Positions 2,239 to 57,880 of a stretch of DNA of 64,000 bases are shown here, in pieces (within the stretch, counting starts at the first letter, position 1; every line of letters starts with the position of its first letter). The translations under genes were made by a program, and so were the position numbers. The notes beneath the pieces were generated by a model. It saw only the letters and a program-made list of their open reading frames with translations, did not search any database and was not told where the DNA came from. The stretch lies in IMG/VR virus record IMGVR_UViG_3300046804_003469, positions 1-64,000 of that record; one strand, given 5' to 3'.

Positions 2239-3170
2239 AAAGAGTTTTAGTAACAGGTGGATGTGGATTTATAGGTCATCACCTTGTAATGAAACTTCTA
2301 AAAGAAGGATATGAAGTAACTGTTTTTGATAATCAACAGAGAGGAAATATTGGTCTTTTAGAATCTGTAAAAGATAAGATTAATTATTATAATGGTGACA
2401 TCAGACAACTTGATGATCTTGTAAATGCATCTGTAAATATTGATGTAATTATTCATTTAGCATTTGTAAACGGAACAAAAAACTTTTATTCAATACCTAG
2501 TTCAATTATAGATATTGGAATTCGTGGATTAATGAATGTTTATGATGCTGCAAAAATTAATAATATCAAAGAATTGTTTTTAGCATCATCTTCAGAAACA
2601 TATCAAACTCCTCCAATTACTCCTACACCAGAAGATGTTCCTTTGATTATTCCTGATGTAACAAATCCAAGGTATTCATATGGAGGAACAAAAATCTTAT
2701 ATGAGTTAGTTGGTCAACACTATAGGAGTGATGAGTTTGATAGAGTTATTACTTTTAGACCTCATAATGTTTATGGAACAAACATGGGTAAAGATCATGT
2801 TATTCCAGAATTAATTGAAAAAATTAAAAAGGGATATGATTCTGGTGAAATAACTTTATTAGGTGATGGAACCCAAACAAGATCTTTTTGCCATATTGAT
2901 GATTTTTGTGATGGAATTTTAACTCTATTAATTTCTGGGAAGCATAAAGAAATTTATCACATTGGAAATGATGAAGAAGTTACAATAGAAGAACTTTGTA
3001 AAAAAATATTTAATACGATGAATGTAAATCTGAAGATTAAATATTCAGAAGCACCTAGGGGAGAAACAAATCGTAGAATCCCTGACATTTCTAAATTAAA
3101 ATCATTAGGATATAATCCTAAAATAAATCTTGATGAAGGATTAGTACAAATATTAAATGAGGAAAAATGA
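2235..3170 (+). CDS. NAD-dependent NDP-sugar epimerase/dehydratase/decarboxylase
   Basis: TGGCGFIG, ASSSETY, YGGTK (YxxxK), NVYG, GDGTQTRSF. Confidence 0.85.
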   Translation: MKRVLVTGGCGFIGHHLVMKLLKEGYEVTVFDNQQRGNIGLLESVKDKINYYNGDIRQLDDLVNASVNIDVIIHLAFVNGTKNFYSIPSSIIDIGIRGLMNVYDAAKINNIKELFLASSSETYQTPPITPTPEDVPLIIPDVTNPRYSYGGTKILYELVGQHYRSDEFDRVITFRPHNVYGTNMGKDHVIPELIEKIKKGYDSGEITLLGDGTQTRSFCHIDDFCDGILTLLISGKHKEIYHIGNDEEVTIEELCKKIFNTMNVNLKIKYSEAPRGETNRRIPDISKLKSLGYNPKINLDEGLVQILNEEK

Positions 3171-11158: not shown

Positions 11159-11911
11159 ATGAGCAAAAGTATTACAGTTATTTTAAATGGTTACAAAAGA
11201 AATAATCTGAAAGAACAAGTAGAAGCAATTAGAAATCAAACAGTTCCTGTCCAAGAAATTTTTTATTGGCAAAACACTGTACCTGGATTCTCTTATGATG
11301 AAGATACTTATTCTGAATTAAATTCTGCCCTTAGTAACTATAATTATGGTGTTTGGGCAAGATTTGCATATGCATTGAATGCAAGGACTGATTATGTTTG
11401 TGTATTTGATGATGATACTATTCCTGGAAATAAGTGGCTAGAGAATTGTTTAAACACTTATGAAACACATCCTGGTCTTTTGGGTGGAATTGGTCTCTGG
11501 TTTAAAAATAAAAACTATGAGTTAGAGACTCTTGAAGATGGACAACCTGCCAGATTTGGGTGGCATGTTAATAATAACGCTACAGTTCAAGTTGATATTG
11601 TTGGTCATTCTTGGTTTTTCTCTAGAGATCTTCTTTCAGTATTTTGGAGAGAAATGCCTGAGAAACATTGGACAATGTTGTGTGGAGAAGATATTCATTT
11701 CTCGCATATGATTCAAAAATACACTGATCTTAAAACATGGGTTCCTCCACATCCTTCAAATGATACTTCTATGTGGAGTAGTTTAAAGGCACTTCAATAT
11801 GGTGGAGATCATTTGGCAACAGCAAATATTACAGTTCAAACTGGTGAGATGGCTCAATATCTTTCTTATTGTGTTGATAATGGATTTAAACTTCTTAAAG
11901 ATTTAAAATGA
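11159..11911 (+). CDS. GT-A fold (GT2-like) glycosyltransferase
   Basis: ITVILNGYKR, VCVFDDDTIPG, GEDIHFS. Confidence 0.7.
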   Translation: MSKSITVILNGYKRNNLKEQVEAIRNQTVPVQEIFYWQNTVPGFSYDEDTYSELNSALSNYNYGVWARFAYALNARTDYVCVFDDDTIPGNKWLENCLNTYETHPGLLGGIGLWFKNKNYELETLEDGQPARFGWHVNNNATVQVDIVGHSWFFSRDLLSVFWREMPEKHWTMLCGEDIHFSHMIQKYTDLKTWVPPHPSNDTSMWSSLKALQYGGDHLATANITVQTGEMAQYLSYCVDNGFKLLKDLK

Positions 11912-14993: not shown

Positions 14994-15745
14994 ATCGTAT
15001 TACTGATTATTCTGAATTGCAAAATAATATTGTAACTTGGATTAAAGAATATGCTAATTCTAATGGCATTGAATCTCTTGTAGTGGGAATTTCTGGAGGA
15101 ATCGATTCTTCAGTTGTTTCCACTCTTTGTGCTGAGACAGGACTTCCTACTTATGCTTTGTCTATGCCTTTGATGCAAATTTCATCTCAATCTGAATTAT
15201 CTAATACACACCGAGAATTTCTTTCAAAGAAATATAATAATGTAATTTCACTCAAAATTGATTTATCAACAACCTACAATCAGTTTTTAACAGCATCTAG
15301 ATTTTGGTTAGGTGAAGATATGGTCTCCAATAATTTAGCATTGGCAAATACAAAATCTCGTCTTCGTATGGTGACTCTTTATCAAGTTGCTGGATCCGTT
15401 AAGGGTATTGTTGTTGGTACTGGTAATAAAGTCGAAGATTATGGTGTAGGATTCTATACTAAATATGGTGACGGAGGAGTTGACATTGCTCCTATTGCTG
15501 ATCTTTATAAAACTGAAGTATGGGAACTTGGAAAGCATCTTGGTGTAGATCAACGTATTATTGATGCACAACCTACAGATGGTCTCTGGGAAGACGGAAG
15601 AACCGATGAAAATCAAATCGGTGCTTCCTATGCTGAACTTGAAGAAGCAATGGAAAATGGAACTGGTCCTGCAGTTGAAATACTTAAAAAATTCAACGCA
15701 CAAAATAAACACAAAATGATTTCTATTCCTACATTTAAACTATGA
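14990..15745 (+). CDS. nadE: NH3-dependent NAD+ synthetase
   Basis: GISGGIDS PP-loop, NTKSRLRM, GTGNKVE, GFYTKYGDG, PIADLYKTEV, PTDGLW..TDE. Confidence 0.9.
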   Translation: MNRITDYSELQNNIVTWIKEYANSNGIESLVVGISGGIDSSVVSTLCAETGLPTYALSMPLMQISSQSELSNTHREFLSKKYNNVISLKIDLSTTYNQFLTASRFWLGEDMVSNNLALANTKSRLRMVTLYQVAGSVKGIVVGTGNKVEDYGVGFYTKYGDGGVDIAPIADLYKTEVWELGKHLGVDQRIIDAQPTDGLWEDGRTDENQIGASYAELEEAMENGTGPAVEILKKFNAQNKHKMISIPTFKL

Positions 15746-16893
15746 AGATTGGAGTTATCGGAGCAGGAAGACTTGGCATTTGCTTTGCTCTTCTAATGGA
15801 AAAAGCAGGATACGATATATTGGTATCTGATATTCGTGAGAATTATGTTAATGATCTAAACAATAAAAAGATCATAACAAATGAACCTCATGTCCAAGAA
15901 CTGCTGTCAAATTCTAAAAAAATTGTGGCAACTACGGACAATAAAAAAGTAATTGAAGAGTGTGATATTATTTTTACTTTAGTTGCTACACCTTCTCTTC
16001 CTGATGGCAGTTACGATGTAAGTTCCGTTTGGGAAGTTATTGACGACATTCAAAATTCTGAAAAGTCGAGAAATAAATTATTTGTTGTTGGTTGTACAAC
16101 AAATCCAGGAGACTGTGAGAAGTTCCAGGAAGAACTTTTACCTTATAGTGTTGATGTATTATATAATCCAGAATTTATTGCACAAGGATCTATTATCAAT
16201 GATCTTGAAAATGCAGACATGGTTTTGATTGGTGGTAATAATCCTTCCAACATTGAAAAGATTAAAGAAATTTATTATAAGATTCAAATCAACAAACCAA
16301 ATATTTGTACAATGTCTCCTAAGGCAGGTGAAATTACAAAAATTGCTATCAACTGCTTCTTAACTTCAAAGATTAGTTTTGCCAATATGATTGGTGAAGT
16401 GATGTGTTTATCTGGAATGGAAGATGAAGTATCTGACGTTCTAACTGCAATTGGAAGTGATACAAGAATAGGAGGAAAATATCTGAAATATGGATATGGA
16501 TTTGGTGGTCCATGTTTCCCTAGAGATAATAGATCCTTTGCTTCTTATGCTGAAAGCGTTGGATGTCAATTTAATATTGGAAGAACTACTGATAATTTTA
16601 ATAAAAAGCATGTAGAGTTTTTAAAAAATTATTTTATAAACAAAAACTCAAATAATGAACCATATTACTTTGATTATATTTCTTATAAGAAGGGAACTGA
16701 TATACTGATAGAAAGTCAACAATATCAATTGTGTTTAGAATTATTGAATTCTGGATATGTAGTTTATGTAAATGATATAGAATCTGTTGTTGAACAAGTT
16801 AAAGAATCGTTAGAAAATAAATTTTATGATAGAATTAGATTTGTCAAAGATGAATCTGAGTTACCAGAAAAAATTTTAAAAATTAAATTTTAA
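15742..16893 (+). CDS. ugd: UDP-glucose 6-dehydrogenase family protein
   Basis: GAGRLG, VATPS, NPEFIAQG, KISFAN, GFGGPCFPRD. Confidence 0.8.
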   Translation: MKIGVIGAGRLGICFALLMEKAGYDILVSDIRENYVNDLNNKKIITNEPHVQELLSNSKKIVATTDNKKVIEECDIIFTLVATPSLPDGSYDVSSVWEVIDDIQNSEKSRNKLFVVGCTTNPGDCEKFQEELLPYSVDVLYNPEFIAQGSIINDLENADMVLIGGNNPSNIEKIKEIYYKIQINKPNICTMSPKAGEITKIAINCFLTSKISFANMIGEVMCLSGMEDEVSDVLTAIGSDTRIGGKYLKYGYGFGGPCFPRDNRSFASYAESVGCQFNIGRTTDNFNKKHVEFLKNYFINKNSNNEPYYFDYISYKKGTDILIESQQYQLCLELLNSGYVVYVNDIESVVEQVKESLENKFYDRIRFVKDESELPEKILKIKF

Positions 16894-25489: not shown

Positions 25490-25902
25490 TGGCAGATAAA
25501 GATCCTTACATTTACAGAATCCGTGAGATTCATAAAGTAGTTGATGGAGATACTATTGATGCTGACATTGATTTGGGTTTTGATATTTCTCTCACTAAGC
25601 GAATTCGCCTTGCTGGGGTTGATACTCCTGAGTCACGCACTGCAGATGCGAATGAAAAGAAATATGGACTTGAAGCGAAAGAATGGTTGAAGCACCGTTG
25701 TGAAGGTGCTAAGGACATTCTGATCAAGACTGAACTTCCAGACTCCACAGAGAAGTATGGTCGTATTATTGGTCATTTATTCATTAATGGCGAAACAACA
25801 TCCCTCAACAATCAAATGATTACTGAGGGATATGCTTGGAACTATGACGGTGGAACTAAAGTTAAGAATTTTGCCGAATTAGATTCTAAGAGGAAAAAAT
25901 GA
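25489..25902 (+). CDS. Thermonuclease (SNase)-like nuclease
   Basis: VVDGDT, RIRLAGVDTPE, KYGR. Confidence 0.85.
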   Translation: MADKDPYIYRIREIHKVVDGDTIDADIDLGFDISLTKRIRLAGVDTPESRTADANEKKYGLEAKEWLKHRCEGAKDILIKTELPDSTEKYGRIIGHLFINGETTSLNNQMITEGYAWNYDGGTKVKNFAELDSKRKK

Positions 25903-26642
25903 AAAAATTTTTTTCAATTTTATCTGTTGCATTATTATCCTTACCAGTCAGTGCTGAATCATTAACTAAAACACAACCAACTGTAAAACCATATAGTTTA
26001 TCAGCAATGGGTTGTATGATTCTTTTGGAATGTACAGAAGGAGTTGAAAAACTTACATCAGATTCTGAATTTTTGAAAGGATCTGAATTTGATCCTTTTA
26101 GAGAAGAAATTAAAAGTATTCTTACAGGTCTCGATAAACTTAATGTTCCCGTTTATGTTGCCCCAGAAAGATATTTCACACCAAGAACCGTAGGATTATA
26201 TAAACCAGAATATAATCGATTTTTTGTGAATGAAATTCTTCTTAAAGATCCAAGAGAATTCTTGGGAACAATGAGACATGAGGGATGGCATACAGTTCAA
26301 GATTGTATGGGTGGTGGATTGAATACTGCATTTATGGCACAAGTACATCAAGATTCCGAAATACCTTCTTGGGTAATGAAGATGACTAAACTTTCTTATG
26401 AAAGTATGGGCCAAGGTCGTGCTGTGCCTTGGGAAGCAGATGCTAACTGGGCAGAAGAACAATCCAATACAACTGCACAAAAACTTGAAATGTGTGCAAA
26501 AGGTCCATTGTGGGAACAGATTCGTCCAACACCAATGACTATGGAATGGTTAATTGGGTGTGGATGGATGAAACCACAAGAAGGTTTATATCCATATAAT
26601 CCAAATAAAAAATCAGAATATTGTGTAGAGGGAAAATACTAA
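25899..26642 (+). CDS. Exported zincin-like metallopeptidase
   Basis: Signal peptide (VSA/E), HEGWH motif, downstream WEADA glutamate. Confidence 0.7.
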   Translation: MKKFFSILSVALLSLPVSAESLTKTQPTVKPYSLSAMGCMILLECTEGVEKLTSDSEFLKGSEFDPFREEIKSILTGLDKLNVPVYVAPERYFTPRTVGLYKPEYNRFFVNEILLKDPREFLGTMRHEGWHTVQDCMGGGLNTAFMAQVHQDSEIPSWVMKMTKLSYESMGQGRAVPWEADANWAEEQSNTTAQKLEMCAKGPLWEQIRPTPMTMEWLIGCGWMKPQEGLYPYNPNKKSEYCVEGKY

Positions 26643-44812: not shown

Positions 44813-45655
44813 ATGGGCGCTTCACTTATAAAAACAGATTTTATAAAGGAAAAAATATTACGTCCTTCTTTAACGTCTCATTTTGTTTGTGATTTTACTC
44901 CACCTTCAAATATTCAAGATAAAATGAAATTATGGGGAGTAACTAATAGTCCAGTCAATAATAATGATAATCTTTCTTTGTTATGTGCTGAAGCATCTCT
45001 ACCAGGATCATCAGTAGCGACTGTTGACATTGAAAATGATTTTCATGGAGTTTCTGAAAAACATGCTTACAGAAGATTATATGATGATCGAGCAGATTTT
45101 ACATTTTATGTAAGTATAAGAGAAAAAAATGAATATTATGCAATTAAATTTTTTGAGGCGTGGATATCACTAGTCGTAAATGAACAATACGATGCTGGTC
45201 CAGTTCCTATTCAAAATTCAGAATATTATTATCGTGTAAGTTATCCAGAAAGTTATTATGCAAAAGATTTAAGTATTACAAAATTTGAAAGAGATTTTTC
45301 ACTAGGAAATTCTTCGTTATTGACATACAAATTTGTAAATGCATATCCAATTAGTATTAATTCAATGCCAGTTACATATGAACAATCTGAATTATTAAAG
45401 TGTACTGTATCTTTCTTCTATAGTAGATATTATATTACATCTACAGGATCTCAAACACCAACATCAGTTAAAAATGTAAATGCTCCAGGAGTGCCAGAAT
45501 TAAATCGTTCTTATAGTTCTCCATTACCACCTTCAGTGATCTCTCAATATTTGGGAGATCCTACAGGAGCATTTTTAAATGCTAGTCAGACATCAAATTA
45601 TTTTGATCAATCATCAGTATCAAAGTTAGGAACTCGCCAAACTATCAGTAGATAA
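44813..45655 (+). CDS. Tail tube-like protein (gp19/gp54 family)
   Basis: LLCAEASLPG, FTFYV, FFEAW, ITKFE, AYPISI, CTVSF.Y. Confidence 0.75.
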   Translation: MGASLIKTDFIKEKILRPSLTSHFVCDFTPPSNIQDKMKLWGVTNSPVNNNDNLSLLCAEASLPGSSVATVDIENDFHGVSEKHAYRRLYDDRADFTFYVSIREKNEYYAIKFFEAWISLVVNEQYDAGPVPIQNSEYYYRVSYPESYYAKDLSITKFERDFSLGNSSLLTYKFVNAYPISINSMPVTYEQSELLKCTVSFFYSRYYITSTGSQTPTSVKNVNAPGVPELNRSYSSPLPPSVISQYLGDPTGAFLNASQTSNYFDQSSVSKLGTRQTISR

Positions 45656-45696: not shown

Positions 45697-46413
45697 ATGC
45701 CTTTACCAAAGATTTCTACACCAACTTATGAGTTGGAATTGCCTTCGACTGGACAATCAATTAAGTATCGTCCATTTTTAGTTAAAGAAGAAAAACTTTT
45801 AGTTCTTGCTTTAGAATCTGAAGATACAAAACAAATTACTAATGCTATTAAAACGGTAATTAAAAATTGTATCGAAACTAAAGGAATTAAAGTAGAACTA
45901 CTTCCCACGTTTGACATCGAATATCTTTTCTTAAATATTCGCGGCAAATCTGTAGGAGAAGAGATCGAAGTTAATATTATTTGTCCCGATGATGAAACAA
46001 CTACAGTTCCTGTAAAAATTAATATTGATGATATCAACGTAGAAAAGAAAGAAACACACGATAAGCATATTAAAGTTGATGATTCTATTATGATGGAAAT
46101 GAAATATCCATCATTAGATCAGTTTATTAAAAATAATTTTGATGTTTCATCGAGTAATATGGAACAATCATTTGATCTAATAGCATCATGCATTGATAAA
46201 ATTTACACTGATGATGAAGTGTGGGTTGCTGCGGATGTTACGAAAAAAGAATTGAGTGAATTCTTAGAACAAATGAATTCAGCACAGTTTAAAAAGATTG
46301 AAGAATTTTTTGAGACCATGCCAAAATTATCACATAAAGTAAAAGTTATAAATCCAAATACAGAAGTAGAAAATGAAGTTGTTCTTGAAGGGTTATCGAG
46401 TTTTTTCGTATAG
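45697..46413 (+). CDS. gp26: Baseplate hub assembly protein
   Basis: MPLPKI, YRPFLVKEEK.L, FDIEYLFLNIRGKSVGE, FFETMP, LEGL..FF. Confidence 0.9.
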   Translation: MPLPKISTPTYELELPSTGQSIKYRPFLVKEEKLLVLALESEDTKQITNAIKTVIKNCIETKGIKVELLPTFDIEYLFLNIRGKSVGEEIEVNIICPDDETTTVPVKINIDDINVEKKETHDKHIKVDDSIMMEMKYPSLDQFIKNNFDVSSSNMEQSFDLIASCIDKIYTDDEVWVAADVTKKELSEFLEQMNSAQFKKIEEFFETMPKLSHKVKVINPNTEVENEVVLEGLSSFFV

Positions 46414-46415
46414 GA

Positions 46416-46595
46416 ATGATCCATATGGATCTTGAAAATTATTTTAAATTAAATTTTTCCTTAATGCAGTATCATAAATACTCATTAACGGAGATTGAAA
46501 ATATGATTCCTTGGGAAAGGGATATCTATGTTGAACTTTTAAAACAGCATCTGGAAGACGAAAAACTCAAGCAGCAACAGCAAAATGCCAGATAA
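46416..46595 (+). CDS. gp51: Baseplate hub assembly catalyst (not in ORF track)
   Basis: LENYFKLNFSLMQYHKYSLTEIENMIPWERDIYV. Confidence 0.85.
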   Translation: MIHMDLENYFKLNFSLMQYHKYSLTEIENMIPWERDIYVELLKQHLEDEKLKQQQQNAR

Positions 46596-49152
46596 TATTA
46601 ATGTTAATTCAGAAGAACTCAATGAAGTAATACTTCGTTCATTAAAATTATCTGCTAATGCTGTATTATCATATCAACAATATTTTAATATTCTTAAAAA
46701 GAAAATTTCAATGTCAAATATGGCAGGCGGAAGTCTGCCAAGAGAAGAAGAAGAAATTTTAAGACAAGAATTATTAAGAGTTTTTAAACTTGGTACTGAA
46801 GGTAGAAAAAAGAAATTTAAAATTAAATCTAAAAAAGTAAAAGTTAGTAATAAAAAAACTAAAGAAAAGGCACCAACAAAAGAAGATCAGAAACAAAGAA
46901 GAACTGATGGTGGAGGAGCACTGGTAAAATCTGAAAAGAAACCTGCTTTTGTACAAAAATTTGTACCTACTAAAAAAGAAGATGATGCAGTTAAGCAATC
47001 ATTAGATGATATTCAAAGTTCATTAGATTCTATTGCAAATATATTATCTAAGGAATATAAGAATCAAAGAAAAATTGATGAATTGGGTAGAAGAAAAAAG
47101 GAAAACGAAAGAAGAAAGAAAAAAGAAGAATTACTTGAAGGTGCAACAAAACCAGTTATTAATGCTGTTAAAAGATTCTTATCTCCACTAAAATCATTCT
47201 GGGATAAATTAATTAATTTTATTACATACACTCTATTGGGAAGAGCATTTAATATGTTCTTGGAGTGGTCATCTAAACCAGAAAATAAAGAGAAATTAAA
47301 ATCTTTAGGTAACTTCTTAAAGACATGGTGGCCTACTCTTCTTGGCGCTTTTGTATTATTTGCAACTCCTCTGGGTGGATTTATTAGATCCGTTGTAGGA
47401 ACTGTAGCAAAATTAACGTTACAATTATCTAAATTTGCTATACCAAAATTACTGAGATTTATGACAAGTCCTGCTGGAATAGCATTAGGACTTGCAACTG
47501 CTGGCGCATGGGTTCCTGCAGTTGCACCACAAACTGTCAATGAGCAAGAAAGAAGAACTGATACTGCAAAGGGAAGTAAAGAAGATAAGATTAAACAATT
47601 AGAAACTCAAAAATCAAATTTAAATTGGTTCGAAAAACTTCAAGGAAAAGGTTCTGAAATTGATGAGCAACTTTATCATTTAAAAACTGGTAAAACAAAA
47701 TCATATGGTGGATTGTTTGGTCATGCATTTGGTGGAACTTTAGGATGGTATAGTGGATATAAGAAAGGTGGAATACCATCTTTCAGTGGTGTTGTAAATC
47801 ATAAAACAGGAAAAACAGTATCTGGTGCAGGACCTGATACACAAATGTTGCCGATGCAAGATGGTGGAGCAGTTGTTCTTCAAAGAGGAGAAACAGTTCT
47901 TCAAGTTGGTGCTCGTGAAAAAATTATAAAAGAAAAAGGATTTGATCCTTTAGAATATAATGTTGGAACAAATGCAAATAAACCAAGAAAAATATCCAGC
48001 AAAATCTTTAAGGCATCTGGAGGTGGTATATTAGGTTATGCTAATGGTGGAGTTATTGGTGGTAAACCAGACTTTTGGAAACTTGCTGCCTTAGCATCTA
48101 AAGAAGATAGTTTACATCCACAAGGACAAGCAGATGTAGCACAAGCAATTTATAATCGATCTGTTGCTGGTTCTTATCCTGGAGGAAAATCTATTGGTAA
48201 TATTGTTACAGCACCTGGACAATTTGCACCAACTTTTGGAAATCCTAGTGTGTGGAAATCAATTGTAGATAAGAGTTCAGCAATTGCTGCAGTAGGAAAT
48301 GCTGACAAACTTAACATGGCAGTTAAAAGTATAACTAATCCATCTTTGCAGCAAAATGCTAAATCCTTTGTTGGTGGAAGAACTGATTTTATGGGAGAAA
48401 GTCAGAAACCTTATATGAAACCAGGAGATGTTACAAGAGGAAGAGGATATAATTTCCATGGTTGGTTTTATGATACAAAATTAAAAAACCCAGCACCAAT
48501 TCCTGATATTATTAAATCACAACAAAAAACAACAGATTCAAAACCAAAACCAAAACAAGAACAAGAACCAAATATATTCCAAAAAATTTCTTCTGGTATT
48601 CAATCCATGTTTGGTGGGCAGAAAAAGAAGGATGGTGGATTGGTTGGAAATTCGGCAAAATTTTTGTCAGACATTGGAACATCGAAAGGAATGCAATGGA
48701 AGGGGCAAGAAAGTGCAATACAAAAACTTCTGGGTATTTCAATTCCTAAGTCAAATGGTAAATCATTTTCTGGATTGATTAAAGAAAATAGTGGAATGGA
48801 TATTCCAGGTGCTGGTAGAGATAGACAGCATCTTGATGGTGAACCTGGAGAATATGTATTAACGAAAAGAGTTGTTGATGAAATTGGAGTTAATAATCTA
48901 GATAGATTAGTTGCAATGATCGACAAAAATTCAAGTGCTGCTAAAAGAGGAAAAACAATTCCTGGACCACCAGTTGAAGATAATATGAGCAATAATATTA
49001 TTACTTTACCTCCTATTGTTAGATCATCTGCTGATATGTCAGTAAAATCTTCTAGAGATAGACGTGCTCCTCGTTTTTCTGCAACTTCTGGTATTAGAGA
49101 TAGAGTTAAAAAAGATATCGCTAATAGGTACGGTATAGTACACACATTCTAA
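46585..49152 (+). CDS. Tape-measure/hub-like protein with SleB-type cell-wall hydrolase domain
   Basis: Coiled coil, hydrophobic helices, Gly-rich segments; KE..QADVAQAIYNR..IVTAPGQF; follows gp26/gp51. Confidence 0.65.
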   Translation: MPDNINVNSEELNEVILRSLKLSANAVLSYQQYFNILKKKISMSNMAGGSLPREEEEILRQELLRVFKLGTEGRKKKFKIKSKKVKVSNKKTKEKAPTKEDQKQRRTDGGGALVKSEKKPAFVQKFVPTKKEDDAVKQSLDDIQSSLDSIANILSKEYKNQRKIDELGRRKKENERRKKKEELLEGATKPVINAVKRFLSPLKSFWDKLINFITYTLLGRAFNMFLEWSSKPENKEKLKSLGNFLKTWWPTLLGAFVLFATPLGGFIRSVVGTVAKLTLQLSKFAIPKLLRFMTSPAGIALGLATAGAWVPAVAPQTVNEQERRTDTAKGSKEDKIKQLETQKSNLNWFEKLQGKGSEIDEQLYHLKTGKTKSYGGLFGHAFGGTLGWYSGYKKGGIPSFSGVVNHKTGKTVSGAGPDTQMLPMQDGGAVVLQRGETVLQVGAREKIIKEKGFDPLEYNVGTNANKPRKISSKIFKASGGGILGYANGGVIGGKPDFWKLAALASKEDSLHPQGQADVAQAIYNRSVAGSYPGGKSIGNIVTAPGQFAPTFGNPSVWKSIVDKSSAIAAVGNADKLNMAVKSITNPSLQQNAKSFVGGRTDFMGESQKPYMKPGDVTRGRGYNFHGWFYDTKLKNPAPIPDIIKSQQKTTDSKPKPKQEQEPNIFQKISSGIQSMFGGQKKKDGGLVGNSAKFLSDIGTSKGMQWKGQESAIQKLLGISIPKSNGKSFSGLIKENSGMDIPGAGRDRQHLDGEPGEYVLTKRVVDEIGVNNLDRLVAMIDKNSSAAKRGKTIPGPPVEDNMSNNIITLPPIVRSSADMSVKSSRDRRAPRFSATSGIRDRVKKDIANRYGIVHTF

Positions 49153-49161
49153 AATAAGTAA

Positions 49162-51966
49162 ATGGCACCAAAACTTTTACCATCATCAAAATCATCTTCA
49201 ATTATTAAATCTAAAAAAGTTTCCGCGTCAAAATTCATGGGAACTGGTAAAAGTTCTGGTGCATTAATCAAATCAGATAAAGGTAGTTCGTTAGTTCAAG
49301 GTATTATTGGCGTAAAAGTCAAAGTTATCAATGTTGAAAAATTAATTCAAAATAAACTTTTATTAGAATCTAAAGAAAGAAAAGATAAAAGGAAAGAAGA
49401 TGAGAATAACAAAAGAGAAGAAAACAAAAAGAAATTAAAAAAGAAAAAAACACAATTCAAATCTTCTATACTTGGATCAGTATTATCAAAGATTACATTA
49501 ATCGATGAAATTAATAGGTTTATACTTTTCACACTTTTGGGATTTATTTACAATAATATTAAAGGATTTATTCCGCAACTTATACAATTTACAAAATACC
49601 TTGCTCCAGTAGGAAAATTTTTTGAATTTTTAGTTGGTAATTTCTTTGAAAATATTGTCAATTTAATTGATTTTGGAGACAAAGCCTATAAACGAATTAG
49701 AGATATATCAAAAGGAATTGGTGGAGAACCTTTCGCAAAAGGATTTGATGATTTTACAAGTAATCTAACTAAATTTGTTAATCTTGCTCTCATTGTTGGA
49801 ATGGCAACGATGGGTGGTCCTAATGTTAAAAAGCAAGGATCAACTACAACAGGAGGAGTTAGATTAAAACCTGGAGAAGGTGGAAGACCAAGAGTTACTA
49901 AAAGTGGTGGTGGTCGTGCTGGTGGTATTGATATTAGAAATCCTTTTAGAGAAAGACCAAAAGTATCTACAAGTGGTGGTAGAACTGCTGGGGAATTTGA
50001 GTTTAGAAATCCATTAAGACAAAGACCAAAAATAACTGGAGATGTTGCCGAAGGAATTGGTGGAAGAATTGCTAAAGGTGCTGGAAGATTTAGTAAAATA
50101 GGAACTAAAGGTATTCCTTTAATAGGACCTCTAATTGATATTGCAATTCGTACATTAATATTCCATGAACCACTTGGAAAAGCAGCAGCAGGTGCTGCAG
50201 GTGCTGCTGTAGGACAAGCAATTGGTGGATGGGTTGGTGGCACAATTGGTGGAATTGCTGGATCAGTTGTACCAATTATTGGTAATATACTTGGAGGTGC
50301 TGCTGGAGTAACTGTAGGTCAATTGCTTGGGGGATTATTAGGAGATCAATTAGGTGTAGCTTTGTATGATACAATTATGTATTATGCAAATAAATCAGGT
50401 AAAAATGTTACTGGACATGCTGGAGGTGGAAAAGTATCTACAAGAAAAGGACAAATTGTTGGTGGAGAAATAAAAAGAAGTCTGAAAAAAACTTCTAGAA
50501 AAAAAGTTACCCCACCAGCACCACAGAAAACTATTCCAGGAAAAGATATTGGTGGATTTAGAGAAATAGAAAAAATATTTCCATATCCTCCAGAGAGTCA
50601 AAAGATAGTTAGTCCTTTAGGGACAATTATAAAATCTTCAAAAACAGTTAAAGAGATTCCACTTGTTGGTGGAATTATGGGTATTGCTTTGGATCTCGTC
50701 ATGGGTCAAAAACCAGACAGGGTTTCATATGAAAATTTTGGTGTATCTATTGGAAATTTAATTGGGCAACTTGTCAATAAAGATATTAGACTAACATTTA
50801 ATGATATAAGAAAATCTATTATTGGAATGGCAAACGGTGGAGAATTAGATATAAATCTTGAAGATCAATCATACATGATTGGAGAAACAATAGGAAATAT
50901 GATAAGTTCCGTAATTGGAAGATTAATAGATGATAGAATTACTGATATTATCAAAAATATATCTTTAGAATTATCCAAAAAACCACTTAAACTTGAGAAC
51001 GAACAACTGAGAACTGGAGGAGAACAGGGAGCGGGACCAGAAGGACCTGCAGATTTTAGTGGTTCTTCAGGTGCAGAAAAGGCAATGCATTATTTGATGT
51101 CTCAAGGTTTATCTGCTGCCGCTGCTGCTGGAATTGCAGGAAACTTAATGCAAGAATCTGGATTTAATCCAGCAGCAGATAATGGTGGTCACCATGGAAT
51201 AGCGCAGTGGGATAAATCAGTTAGATGGCCAAGAGTTTCTGCTTATATTCGTTCTGTTGGTATGAATCCAGAATCTTTAGAAGGACAATTAGTTGGATTA
51301 AAATGGGAAGCACAAGGTCCAGAAAAACCTTCTTGGACTAGTGTTTCTAATGCAAGCACTGCAGAACAAGCTGCCGCTATTTGGTTAAAAGTTTTTGAAA
51401 GATCTGGCGAGAAACCAGGCATGAGAGGATATGATAATAGAATAATCCATGCGAAAGACTTATTCTCAAAATATGGAAGTTATACTCCAAAAGGTGGATA
51501 TGATTTAAAAGGAACTGGTGTACAAAAAATTATAGATCTTGGTAAAAGACTTCTCACACAAGGATACTATGTTGGTTATAATAAATTCTTTGATGGTTAC
51601 AGATATGTTCCTCAAGGAACCGCATATGTTGGAACACATACTCCAGGAAGTTTGCATTATTCTGCTCGTGCTTTGGATATATCTGGAGTTGGTGCTGAAA
51701 AATTAGATCAACTTTACTCTCAATTAAAAGGAACAAATCCAACACAATTGATATGGAGAGCTCCAGGACATTATGATCACTTACATATTGCATATAAAGA
51801 TGGTGGTTTAATTGCAGATACTAAAAAGAAAGATTATAGTTCACTTCAAATGAACACTTCTTATGAAAAATCTTCTAAAGTAAAATATGTGATTACTCCA
51901 ATAATATATGAAAAACAAATTAAAGTTTCTGCAAATAAAAGCAGAGTTTTAGATTTTGGTGATTAA
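49162..51966 (+). CDS. Second tape-measure-like protein with tail-lysozyme domain and His-rich peptidase-like domain
   Basis: Glycine zipper; AAAGIAGNLMQESGFNP..GIAQW..FERSG; SLHYSARALD..HYDHLHIA. Confidence 0.65.
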   Translation: MAPKLLPSSKSSSIIKSKKVSASKFMGTGKSSGALIKSDKGSSLVQGIIGVKVKVINVEKLIQNKLLLESKERKDKRKEDENNKREENKKKLKKKKTQFKSSILGSVLSKITLIDEINRFILFTLLGFIYNNIKGFIPQLIQFTKYLAPVGKFFEFLVGNFFENIVNLIDFGDKAYKRIRDISKGIGGEPFAKGFDDFTSNLTKFVNLALIVGMATMGGPNVKKQGSTTTGGVRLKPGEGGRPRVTKSGGGRAGGIDIRNPFRERPKVSTSGGRTAGEFEFRNPLRQRPKITGDVAEGIGGRIAKGAGRFSKIGTKGIPLIGPLIDIAIRTLIFHEPLGKAAAGAAGAAVGQAIGGWVGGTIGGIAGSVVPIIGNILGGAAGVTVGQLLGGLLGDQLGVALYDTIMYYANKSGKNVTGHAGGGKVSTRKGQIVGGEIKRSLKKTSRKKVTPPAPQKTIPGKDIGGFREIEKIFPYPPESQKIVSPLGTIIKSSKTVKEIPLVGGIMGIALDLVMGQKPDRVSYENFGVSIGNLIGQLVNKDIRLTFNDIRKSIIGMANGGELDINLEDQSYMIGETIGNMISSVIGRLIDDRITDIIKNISLELSKKPLKLENEQLRTGGEQGAGPEGPADFSGSSGAEKAMHYLMSQGLSAAAAAGIAGNLMQESGFNPAADNGGHHGIAQWDKSVRWPRVSAYIRSVGMNPESLEGQLVGLKWEAQGPEKPSWTSVSNASTAEQAAAIWLKVFERSGEKPGMRGYDNRIIHAKDLFSKYGSYTPKGGYDLKGTGVQKIIDLGKRLLTQGYYVGYNKFFDGYRYVPQGTAYVGTHTPGSLHYSARALDISGVGAEKLDQLYSQLKGTNPTQLIWRAPGHYDHLHIAYKDGGLIADTKKKDYSSLQMNTSYEKSSKVKYVITPIIYEKQIKVSANKSRVLDFGD

Positions 51967-56378: not shown

Positions 56379-57047
56379 ATGTTATTTGATGATCTTGCAG
56401 TAGGAAAAAGACTGTTTGTAGGAAATGGTAAACCAGAAATTCTTGGAAGAGGACCTTTGGAAGTTCGTGGTTCTGCCTATATTGAAGGTCCAGAAATTGT
56501 AGGTAATCCTAACCAATTTAAAACTCCTTCTCCAACTGAATTGGGAACTTTGATGTGTGGTCAGACGACAAACGTTGAAATGAAACCAATTCCTTTTTAT
56601 TCATTGTTTGTGAGAACTTTTGCCAGAATTAAAAGTTTTCTAAAAGTTGATACACTTTTGACCGTTGAACTTATCAACGCAAAAATAGTACATACAGAAG
56701 TTCTTATGGCAAAAACTAAGAACTTTATAATTGATCATCCAACAAAAAATGATAAAAAGTTAATTCATGCATGTTTAGAAGGTGCAGAAAATGGTGTTTA
56801 TGTAAGAGGAAGACTGACAAATTCAGATGAAATTAAATTGCCATATTACTGGTGCAAATTAGTAGATCCTGCATCAATTACTATATCCTTGACACCTATT
56901 GGATCACACCAAGATCTTTGTATTAAAAGATTAACATCAGATTCAGTTATCATTCAATCCAGACCAGGACAAATAATTGATTGCTTCTATCACATTTTTG
57001 CAGAAAGAGTAGATGTAGAAAAACTAACAACGGAGATTGATTCATGA
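56379..57047 (+). CDS. Tail-associated protein with chaperone-like C-terminal domain
   Basis: KNFIIDHPTK..LIHACLEGAE.GVYVRG..LP.YW..AER.D. Confidence 0.6.
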   Translation: MLFDDLAVGKRLFVGNGKPEILGRGPLEVRGSAYIEGPEIVGNPNQFKTPSPTELGTLMCGQTTNVEMKPIPFYSLFVRTFARIKSFLKVDTLLTVELINAKIVHTEVLMAKTKNFIIDHPTKNDKKLIHACLEGAENGVYVRGRLTNSDEIKLPYYWCKLVDPASITISLTPIGSHQDLCIKRLTSDSVIIQSRPGQIIDCFYHIFAERVDVEKLTTEIDS

Positions 57048-57880
57048 CATTTACTTTTAAACATTATGGTACTTTTACTGGACCAAATAGTATAAACGGC
57101 GATTATCTTTATGATACTATATCACAAGAAGGAACGTGGCAAAATTTTCTACCAAATGATCCATCATTTAAACTAACTGATATTGCGGTAGTTTTATACA
57201 ATAATCAGGCAGATTATTGTGGAATGTATGTGAACGGTATTTCTTGCAGTACTTTAAATATTGCAAAAAACACTGGAAATTTATCACTTCTCAATATTAT
57301 GTCCAGTAATACAATATTCGCTGGAAGAACTATTACAAATGGAAATGTTTTAATTAATGGTGCTACTATTATTAATGGATCTCTTGTAGTAAATGGAGGT
57401 ATTAGTGGACCTACAATTACCAGTATTTACGCACAAATCGCATCAAAAAAATCTTTTGATATCCCACATCCTACTAAAAAGAATTATCGTTTAAGATATA
57501 TTTGTTTAGAAGGACCAGATGCTGAAGTTTATATAAGAGGGAAATTAGAAAATAAAAATATTATTGAACTTCCAGAATATTGGAAAAAATTAGTTCATGA
57601 GGAGACCATTGGTGTTTCTTTAACACCAATCGGTTATCATCAAGAATTATATGTAGAAAGAATTGAAGACGGTACGAAAATTTTTATTAAAAATAATAAA
57701 GAAGAAAATATTAATTGCACATACGTTGTCTATGGTGAAAGAAAAGATTGTAGTAAAAATATTTCTGAGTATAAAGGAACTTCTGCAGAAAATTATCCAG
57801 GTAACAATAATGAATATGTAATTAATGGTGGTTTAAGGAGAAATATCTTCAATATTACTTCTTTACCATCAAATAAATAA
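57044..57880 (+). CDS. Tail-associated protein, paralogous C-terminal domain
   Basis: KSFDIPHPTK..LRYICLEGPD.EVYIRG..LPEYW..GERKD. Confidence 0.6.
   Translation: MTFTFKHYGTFTGPNSINGDYLYDTISQEGTWQNFLPNDPSFKLTDIAVVLYNNQADYCGMYVNGISCSTLNIAKNTGNLSLLNIMSSNTIFAGRTITNGNVLINGATIINGSLVVNGGISGPTITSIYAQIASKKSFDIPHPTKKNYRLRYICLEGPDAEVYIRGKLENKNIIELPEYWKKLVHEETIGVSLTPIGYHQELYVERIEDGTKIFIKNNKEENINCTYVVYGERKDCSKNISEYKGTSAENYPGNNNEYVINGGLRRNIFNITSLPSNK

Follow-up and report, generated by a model that had tools for sequence, protein, structure and literature searches.

Long-tailed phages commonly make two tail assembly chaperones from one gene by a programmed -1 frameshift, the best described case being gpG and gpGT of phage lambda (Levin 1993; Xu, Hendrix and Duda 2004; reviewed in PMC5009743). 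[quoted passage not shown] The contractile-tailed phages P2 (gpE/E+E') and Mu (gp41/42) appear to use a similar -1 shift upstream of the tape measure gene (Xu 2004), with proteins of recognised tail assembly chaperone (TAC) families encoded directly between the tube and tape-measure genes. Bacterial-type -1 slips on homopolymeric heptamers are also known from E. coli dnaX (gamma/tau) and from IS3-family elements, some IS elements using U_UU.U_UU.C, with possible upstream SD-like and downstream hairpin stimulators (PMC4066793). In phage T4, by contrast, the hub assembly chaperones gp26 and gp51 are encoded by separate, divergently transcribed paralogous genes with no frameshift, and gp51 is absent from the particle (Leiman 2010; PMC3004832).

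We examined the end of gene 26 in a 64,000-nucleotide stretch of DNA from a T4-like cyanophage (hereafter the window). A first-pass annotation had proposed that a -1 shift at the end of this gene fuses gp26 to the following small ORF, labelled gp51, and all of its sequence statements proved correct (Table 1). Gene 26 ends AGT TTT TTC GTA TAG, and the small ORF lies in the -1 frame. Since this frame is closed by a TGA at 46386-46388 and is open only from 46389, the only place where the two frames can be joined is a 25-nt overlap that contains the heptamer. A slip would give residues 1-237 of gp26 followed by the -1-frame codons, 299 residues in all, with the junction SSFF-RIGM. The gene pair lies in the baseplate hub module, with gp53, gp48, gp2 and gp4 on one side and a tube-like gene, two large hydrolase-bearing proteins, a phrog_350 tail protein and gp5 on the other.

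Table 1. Features at the gene 26 junction and its neighbours (all on the + strand; positions are those of the window).
Feature	Coordinates	Observations
Upstream gene, tail-tube-fold protein, positional counterpart of the gp54 baseplate-tail tube initiator	44813..45655	PF23849 Phage_TTP_2, E 1.6e-12; phrog_45 tail tube, E 3e-33; same position annotated as gp54, tube initiator or tail tube in KVP40-like, S13, Mosig, phiM7 and AS-sw
Gene 26, short form made by standard decoding, hub assembly chaperone of the PF12322 (T4_baseplate) family, 238 aa	45697..46413	PF12322, E 4e-77, profile positions 2-218 of 219; phrog_150 positions 5-232 of 282; AF2 model pLDDT 84.7
SD-like GAAGGG, possible stimulator, unproven	46387..46392	Ends 8 nt upstream of the heptamer; encodes the conserved Glu-Gly
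Slippery heptamer T_TTT_TTC, proposed -1 shift site	46401..46407	In phase with gene 26
-1-frame extension read after the slip, 62 codons plus stop	46407..46595	blastp to T4 gp51 residues 211-246, E 1.6e-5; hhalign to the T4 gp51 family, probability 90%, E 1.6e-6; phrog_634; phrog_150 positions 241-281
0-frame stop TAG of gene 26	46411..46413	One codon after the heptamer; 0-2 codons after it in most relatives
59-codon ORF as usually annotated ('gp51, baseplate hub assembly catalyst')	46416..46595	ATG not conserved
Small hairpin GATCC-ATAT-GGATC, possible weak stimulator	46418..46431	Starts 10 nt after the heptamer; -6.3 kcal/mol
Next gene, 855 aa, candidate tape measure or hub protein, unproven	46585..49152	Overlaps the end of the extension; weak Hydrolase_2 hit; phrog_35029 of unknown function; poorly conserved and never annotated as a tape measure
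934-aa protein with a phage tail lysozyme domain, alternative tape-measure candidate	49162..51966	PF18013, E 2e-26; tape-measure hits phrog_9570 (through the lysozyme domain) and phrog_973

In this one AT-rich genome the heptamer alone is not remarkable, as there are 147 in-phase X_XXY_YYZ motifs in 17,516 codons and 7 of 64 genes have one within 30 nt of their stop, although T_TTT_TTC in phase occurs only here. To determine whether the site is conserved, we compared 175 unique metagenomic loci and 15 isolates from six or more families or genera. The heptamer was invariant at the nucleotide level in 81/81 close relatives, and T_TTT_TTY was present in 175/175 unique junctions from three cyanophage and pelagiphage clades (159 T_TTT_TTC, 14 T_TTT_TTT). 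The small ORF was at -1 in all 173 loci where it could be scored, with no stop between the heptamer and the ORF. The same holds in isolates P-SSM2, S-PRM1, Syn9, S-CRM01, Mosig, Ochrobactrum OC, Sinorhizobium phiM7, Stenotrophomonas Mendera, Delftia PhiW-14, Acinetobacter SH-Ab15599, Aeromonas AS-sw, the KVP40-like R10Z and Cronobacter S13. The 233 metagenomic loci are phylogenetically related, so that these counts are not independent events, and Ackermannviridae relatives (Vi01, phiMAM1, K369, VAP7, 207E48.1) keep the -1 ORF but have only an in-phase U_UUY tetramer rather than a heptamer. An alignment-based search across the whole PF12322 family yielded no stretch that was conserved enough, single-protein searches with KVP40-like, AS-sw and phiMAM1 gp26 found only near-identical contigs, and a homologue search with the window gp26 returned only close relatives at 81-86% identity.

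We next asked whether the constraint on the site goes beyond the protein. Of 125 conserved degenerate codon columns in gene 26, only four have zero third-position entropy, and three of them are the consecutive codons of the heptamer, while flanking codons vary freely at synonymous sites. Other Phe columns mix TTT and TTC (for example 58/22 and 46/34), and the codon preceding the Phe pair is AGT, TCT, GAT, AAT, GCT or GGT, always ending in T. Phe-Phe alone does not explain the fixed TTT TTC order or the invariant T before it. The small ORF is itself under clear purifying selection, with 1036 representative homologues. It is therefore very unlikely that there is no recoding, with the heptamer a by-product of a conserved S-F-F C-terminus and the small ORF a degenerate remnant, although the abundance of in-phase heptamers in this genome would be compatible with such a view.

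A further possibility is that there are two ordinary genes, the 59-aa ORF being translated on its own by initiation at ATG 46416 or at a conserved second ATG at 46425, or by termination-reinitiation after the TAG, and the U-run being conserved as Phe-Phe codons and perhaps as a U-rich translation enhancer. Indeed, the window and 97/173 relatives have an ATG within 12 codons of the site, the stop and ATG are 2 nt apart in the window, and all database records examined annotate two genes. However, 72/173 loci (about 42%) have no ATG, GTG or TTG in the first 12 codons after the shift site, the -1 ORF of SH-Ab15599 has no Met at all, and in AS-sw, S13, Vi01 and phiMAM1 the ORF is unannotated. Moreover, the periodicity of variation changes from frame 0 to frame -1 exactly at the heptamer, upstream of any start, and does so even where the 0-frame stop lies 8 codons further on and no start codon exists. 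In one case, L098, the -1 frame opens exactly at the heptamer. We consider separate translation as the full explanation unlikely, although a free 59-aa peptide may also be made in this phage. Two metagenomic proteins (P0127, P0128) read through the junction in frame, but these may be homopolymer sequencing errors and were not used as evidence.

Comparison with T4 further strengthened the case. T4 gp51 is not the counterpart of the 59-aa ORF but a full gp26 paralogue, consisting of a PF12322 domain (residues 1-201, E 4e-52) and a C-terminal tail homologous to the small ORF, which makes the case stronger than was recognised in the first-pass annotation. The window gp26 aligns end to end with T4 gp26, including the G-L-x-x-F-F C-terminus, whereas the -1 extension aligns with the last ~45 residues of T4 gp51, and the AF2 model of T4 gp51 shows the gp26 fold plus three C-terminal helices. 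Thus, T4 gp51 is the in-frame equivalent of the predicted fusion. A natural control is provided by six genera that encode gp51 separately, which have no slippery heptamer in gene 26 (FF is TTC TTT, as in T4, or is lost) and in which gene 25 follows instead of a -1 ORF. The heptamer thus disappears exactly where a separate gp51 exists, which argues against both two ordinary genes and an absence of recoding.

The motif U_UU.U_UU.C is among the efficient -1 motifs in E. coli (PMC4066793). As a run of 6-7 T is present in every locus, and T7 in 14/173, the long form could instead arise by transcriptional slippage, RNA polymerase adding one extra U and the edited mRNA being read in frame to give the same protein. 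Runs of 6 are probably short for efficient slippage by bacterial polymerase, U7 or A7 runs being noted as avoided for this reason (PMC4066793), and selection keeps C at position 7 in 159/173 loci rather than lengthening the run. The run is also always in the X_XXY_YYZ phase, which only ribosomal slippage requires, though conserved Phe-Phe would also fix the phase. This mechanism thus appears improbable.

The first-pass annotation had also pointed to the SD-like motif and the hairpin, both of which are only weakly supported as stimulators. Both third positions of the SD-like motif vary (GAR GGN), so that no constraint beyond the conserved Glu-Gly codons is visible. The hairpin is weak in this window (z -0.19 for the 53-nt context), although its five pairs are kept in 62-78 of 79 relatives with covariation at two pairs, and downstream structure is enriched family-wide (40-nt z of -1.83 against -0.31 in controls). 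Rfam, terminator and promoter scans of the junction found nothing above background.

The suggestion that the two forms are G/GT equivalents is a reasonable functional analogy, resting on short and long chaperone forms and on a position between a tube-fold gene and large hub or tape-measure candidates, but homology is not established. Gp26 belongs to a different protein family, about 240 aa against about 140 aa for gpG, its extension is only about 60 aa, and its heptamer is U_UUU_UUC. No Pfam TAC hit was obtained, a profile search against PDB sequences found nothing, and a Foldseek hit of the gp26 model to the HK97 chaperone 2ob9 was weak (probability 0.69, E about 1) and was not reproduced with the gp51 model. 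A BFVD search returned only gp26-family and unnamed myovirus proteins, and homology of gp26 to the P2 and Mu chaperones was not detected. The next gene, described in the first-pass annotation as tape-measure-like, is not demonstrably a tape measure. In the KVP40-like phage the downstream 657-aa protein weakly hits the tape-measure family phrog_58 (E 6e-6) and is followed by gp3. The locus also differs from dnaX, in which the shift truncates the protein, as here it would extend it.

Taken together, the comparative evidence strongly supports a programmed -1 frameshift by which gene 26 and the small ORF form one recoded gene, and we hold this view with high confidence, although in the absence of protein, ribosome-profiling or reporter data the slip itself and its efficiency remain inferred. 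In this model most ribosomes terminate at the TAG and make gp26, while a minority slip back one base, with tRNA-Phe in both the P and A sites, and make a long form whose N-terminal part is gp26 and whose C-terminal part is a roughly 55-residue helical tail. The long form would be the orthologue-in-function of T4 gp51, and the short form would correspond to T4 gp26, both products being assembly factors rather than virion parts by analogy with T4 gp51. The frameshift would set a fixed low ratio of long to short form, as in lambda G/GT, a device that the T4 lineage would have replaced with a gene duplication. Such tail-chaperone frameshifts are well known, but we found no published report of this one in the literature searched, from which most subscription journals were missing.

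A broader reading, which we regard as only slightly more likely than not, is that the whole T4 superfamily outside the T-even and pseudo-T-even core makes its hub and tape-measure chaperone pair from one gene by a universally conserved U_UUU_UUY -1 frameshift. This would cover cyanomyoviruses, pelagimyoviruses, KVP40-like and other 'schizo' T-evens, and rhizobial, Stenotrophomonas and Delftia myoviruses. The essential T4 genes 26 and 51 would then be the products of a later duplication that replaced the frameshift, and gp26/gp51 would be the long-missing T4 counterparts of lambda G/GT. Our gp26/gp51 tree places T4 gp26 and gp51 on one side of a 95/95 branch, but with three clans an unrooted tree cannot prove that they are sisters without the assumption that the root lies among the non-T4 lineages. 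On this reading, a programmed frameshift has been evolutionarily exchanged for two genes.

If the slip occurs, it would explain the long-puzzling 59-codon 'gp51' gene and would correct the annotation of thousands of T4-like phage genomes, in which a 'gp51' of about 55-60 aa, variably started, truncated or missed, is really the tail of a ~300-aa trans-frame protein. Gp51 would be the long form of a two-form chaperone whose dose matters. The finding would extend the rule that tailed phages make two tail chaperones by frameshift (Xu, Hendrix and Duda 2004) to the one major myovirus group for which we found no reported case. It also offers a natural experiment in the evolution of recoding, with a frameshift in some lineages against duplicated genes in others and the slippery site lost exactly where it is no longer needed. 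As these phages are among the most abundant marine viruses, the site is also a clean, testable case of recoding on cyanobacterial and SAR11 ribosomes.

The window is part of a T4-like cyanomyovirus, and 373 Synechococcus and Prochlorococcus phage records match the region at 60-80% DNA identity. The 238-aa protein encoded by gene 26 is a full-length member of Pfam PF12322 'T4_baseplate' (E 4e-77) and of phrog_150 'baseplate hub'. The gene ends AGT TTT TTC GTA TAG, which gives an in-phase X_XXY_YYZ heptamer one codon before the stop. The next ORF is in the -1 frame, and the limits of that frame are such that the two frames can be joined only inside a 25-nt window that contains the heptamer. A slip there gives 237 + 62 = 299 residues. 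The SD-like GAAGGG 8 nt upstream of the heptamer and the GATCC-ATAT-GGATC hairpin 10 nt downstream of it, both noted in the first-pass annotation, were found at those positions.

Coordinates of the features discussed in the text
Sequence	Position	Strand	Feature
Window	45697-46413	+	Gene 26, 238 aa
Window	46386-46388		TGA closing the -1 frame, which is open from 46389
Window	46401-46407		In-phase heptamer T_TTT_TTC
Window	46416-46595	+	Small ORF in the -1 frame, 59 codons
Window	46416 and 46425		ATG codons of the small ORF
Window	46585-49152	+	855-aa protein
Window	49162-51966	+	934-aa protein
Window	56379-57047 and 57044-57880	+	Tandem paralogue pair of unknown function
Window	25899-26642	+	Gene with G_GGA_AAA at or within 9 nt of its stop codon
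Window	11159-11911	+	Gene with T_TTA_AAA at or within 9 nt of its stop codon
Window	15742-16893	+	Gene with T_TTA_AAA at or within 9 nt of its stop codon
T4	2803-3090 of locus L089		Gene 26', 95 aa, sharing the stop of gene 26

Taken alone, the heptamer is not more than chance would give, since this AT-rich window has 147 in-phase slippery heptamers in 17,516 codons and 7 of 64 genes have one within 30 nt of the stop. Three other genes carry such a heptamer at or very near their stop codon, and in this AT-rich genome these may well be chance. To determine whether the site at the end of gene 26 is different, we examined its conservation. In 80 IMG/VR loci whose gp26 is 72-83% identical, the heptamer is identical in all and the small ORF is always at -1, while the flanking codons vary freely at synonymous sites (GTT/GTG/GTA, CTT/CTA/CTG/TTA/TTG, GAA/GAG and GGN). 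Per-position entropy shows the usual third-position variability in frame 0 up to the heptamer, then three consecutive frozen third positions, and after that variability in the third positions of frame -1. Of 125 conserved degenerate codon columns in gene 26, only four show no synonymous variation, and three of these are the heptamer codons; other conserved Phe columns mix TTT and TTC (58/22, 46/34, 50/30, 20/59). Two further searches, seeded with Syn9 and pelagiphage Mosig gp26, brought the total to 233 loci and 175 unique junctions. All 173 with a scorable small ORF have it at -1, and all carry T_TTT_TTC (159) or T_TTT_TTT (14) in the overlap; the two unscorable loci are truncated contigs that also have the heptamer. 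The preceding codon is AGT, TCT, GAT, AAT, GCT or GGT, that is, five different amino acids, always with T in the third position.

The same arrangement, gp26 followed by a small ORF at -1 with T_TTT_TTY in the overlap, was found in a wide range of isolates beyond the metagenomic loci. These comprise P-SSM2, S-PRM1, Syn9, S-CRM01 and Pelagibacter phage Mosig; Ochrobactrum phage OC and Sinorhizobium phiM7; Stenotrophomonas Mendera, Delftia PhiW-14 and Acinetobacter SH-Ab15599; and three non-T-even Straboviridae, Aeromonas AS-sw, the KVP40-like R10Z and Cronobacter S13. In a relative of AS-sw the -1 frame opens exactly at the heptamer, which pins the shift site. Ackermannviridae (Vi01, phiMAM1, K369, VAP7, 207E48.1) are a genuine limit of the pattern: they keep a homologous 57-68-codon -1 ORF after gp26 but have only an in-phase U_UUY tetramer, so they may use a weaker tetramer slip or another route.

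We next considered whether the small ORF could instead be translated by separate initiation. This is possible in the window, which has two ATG codons, but it cannot be the general route. In 72 of 173 loci there is no ATG, GTG or TTG within 12 codons after the site, and the -1 ORF of SH-Ab15599 contains no Met at all. In Syn9, Mosig and OC the annotators used an internal Met and so truncated the conserved domain, whereas in AS-sw, S13, Vi01 and phiMAM1 the ORF is not annotated; in Vi01 and phiMAM1 it lacks a start codon. Among 150 representative homologues of the 59-aa ORF, many begin at query residue 17 or carry 20-40 extra N-terminal residues, which shows that gene callers find no consistent start. 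In the pelagiphage-like clade the -1 peptide FFRIALSHDSLENYF is conserved, with variation at -1-frame third positions directly after the heptamer, while the 0-frame stop wanders between one and eight codons downstream.

Comparison with T4 clarified the relation between the two ORFs. T4 gp51 (249 aa) is itself a PF12322 protein over residues 1-201 (E 4e-52) and matches phrog_150 over its whole length. Its last ~45 residues align with the small ORF of the window, both by blastp (E 1.6e-5) and by hhalign to a nine-member gp51 alignment (probability 90%, E 1.6e-6). In a family alignment all gp26 proteins end at the invariant ..F-F motif, where T4 gp51 simply continues. The AF2 models show the same strand and helix order in the window's gp26 (pLDDT 84.7) and in a T4-type gp51 (pLDDT 87.8), and the gp51 model adds three C-terminal helices. 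The cyanophage 'gp51' is therefore only the tail of T4 gp51, and the full equivalent of T4 gp51 here is the predicted trans-frame fusion.

Lineages that encode gp51 separately served as a natural control. T4 gene 26 lies on the opposite strand from gene 51 and is followed by gene 25; T4 also annotates an internal in-frame product of gene 26 (26'), and thus already makes two nested products from this gene by another route. Six genera encode gp51 separately: Tequatrovirus, Mosigvirus, Dhakavirus, an Acinetobacter T4-like phage, Krischvirus and Biquartavirus. In all six, the 3' end of gene 26 has no slippery heptamer (Phe-Phe is TTC TTT, or the motif is changed) and no small -1 ORF follows. The heptamer is thus present where the long form has no gene of its own, and absent where it has one. 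Together with the synonymous-site data, this control excludes a coincidental heptamer. Long in-frame gp51 occurs in 1380 phage records of the T-even and pseudo-T-even groups. A maximum-likelihood tree places T4-type gp26 and gp51 together on one side of a 95/95 branch, away from all frameshift-type genes; if the root lies among the latter, the duplication is derived, although the unrooted tree alone cannot prove this.

The mechanism we propose is a simultaneous -1 slip of two tRNA-Phe on U_UUU_UUC. In E. coli, H_HH.U_UU.Y heptamers are among the most efficient, U_UU.U_UU.C is used by IS elements, and U_UU.C is the second-best tetramer (PMC4066793). Transcriptional slippage on U6 would give the same protein, but it is disfavoured by the short run and by selection for C at position 7. 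The stimulators are uncertain. The local hairpin is -6.3 kcal/mol and its 53-nt context is not unusual (z -0.19); its five pairs are kept in 62-78 of 79 relatives, with covariation at two of them. Over 173 loci the 40 nt downstream are more structured than internal controls (mean z -1.83 against -0.31, and 57% against 14% below -1.5). The SD-like GARGGN encodes the conserved Glu-Gly and shows no extra constraint.

To assess the possible function of the two forms, we examined their neighbours. The gene order here is gp53, gp48, gp2 and gp4 on the minus strand, followed on the plus strand by a tube-fold protein, gp26 with its extension, two large, fast-evolving proteins, a phrog_350 tail protein and gp5. 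Of the two large proteins, the 855-aa protein has a weak SleB-type Hydrolase_2 hit and the 934-aa protein has a phage tail lysozyme domain and tape-measure PHROG hits; one of them is presumably the gp29 (tape measure) analogue that cyanophage annotations lack, although we could not show that the 855-aa protein is a tape measure. Downstream of gp5, two adjacent genes both match phrog_17490 and phrog_28536. In the KVP40-like phage and S13 the order is gp4, gp2, gp54, gp26, the small ORF, a 610-657-aa protein and then gp3, and the 657-aa protein weakly matches a tape-measure family. This resembles the lambda order V, G/GT, H. The T4 tail review lists gp26 and gp51 as hub assembly chaperones (PMC3004832), and one GenBank record, Acinetobacter phage Octan (MT409116.1), already labels its T4-type gp51 a 'tape measure protein assembly chaperone', the only record seen that makes the chaperone link explicit. 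However, we could not show that gp26 is homologous to known tail assembly chaperones. The first-pass annotation had proposed gp26 and a gp26-gp51 fusion as the G/GT equivalents; that reading is therefore a functional analogy, which we consider about as likely to hold as not.

None of the annotated records examined joins the two ORFs. Two metagenomic database proteins (P0127 and P0128) read straight through the junction in frame (..FFRISMAHEDL.., ..CFFQSRYGSH..), and these are either genuine in-frame fusions in some cyanophages or one-base homopolymer errors in the T-run. The shared Pfam domain of T4 gp26 and gp51 is implicit in the databases. Full-text searches, a comprehensive recoding review and the PRFect paper mention no such case; as far as we could find, both the frameshift and its relation to T4 gp51 are unreported, although earlier mention cannot be excluded because most subscription journals fell outside the searches. 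Taken together, our results show a real, deeply conserved recoding signal, related by analogy to the known tail-chaperone frameshift but lying in a gene whose homology to those chaperones could not be shown. A low, unstimulated or weakly stimulated rate of slippage would suit a factor needed in small amounts. We conclude that, pending protein-level confirmation, the signal very probably makes a long form of gp26 equivalent to T4 gp51.
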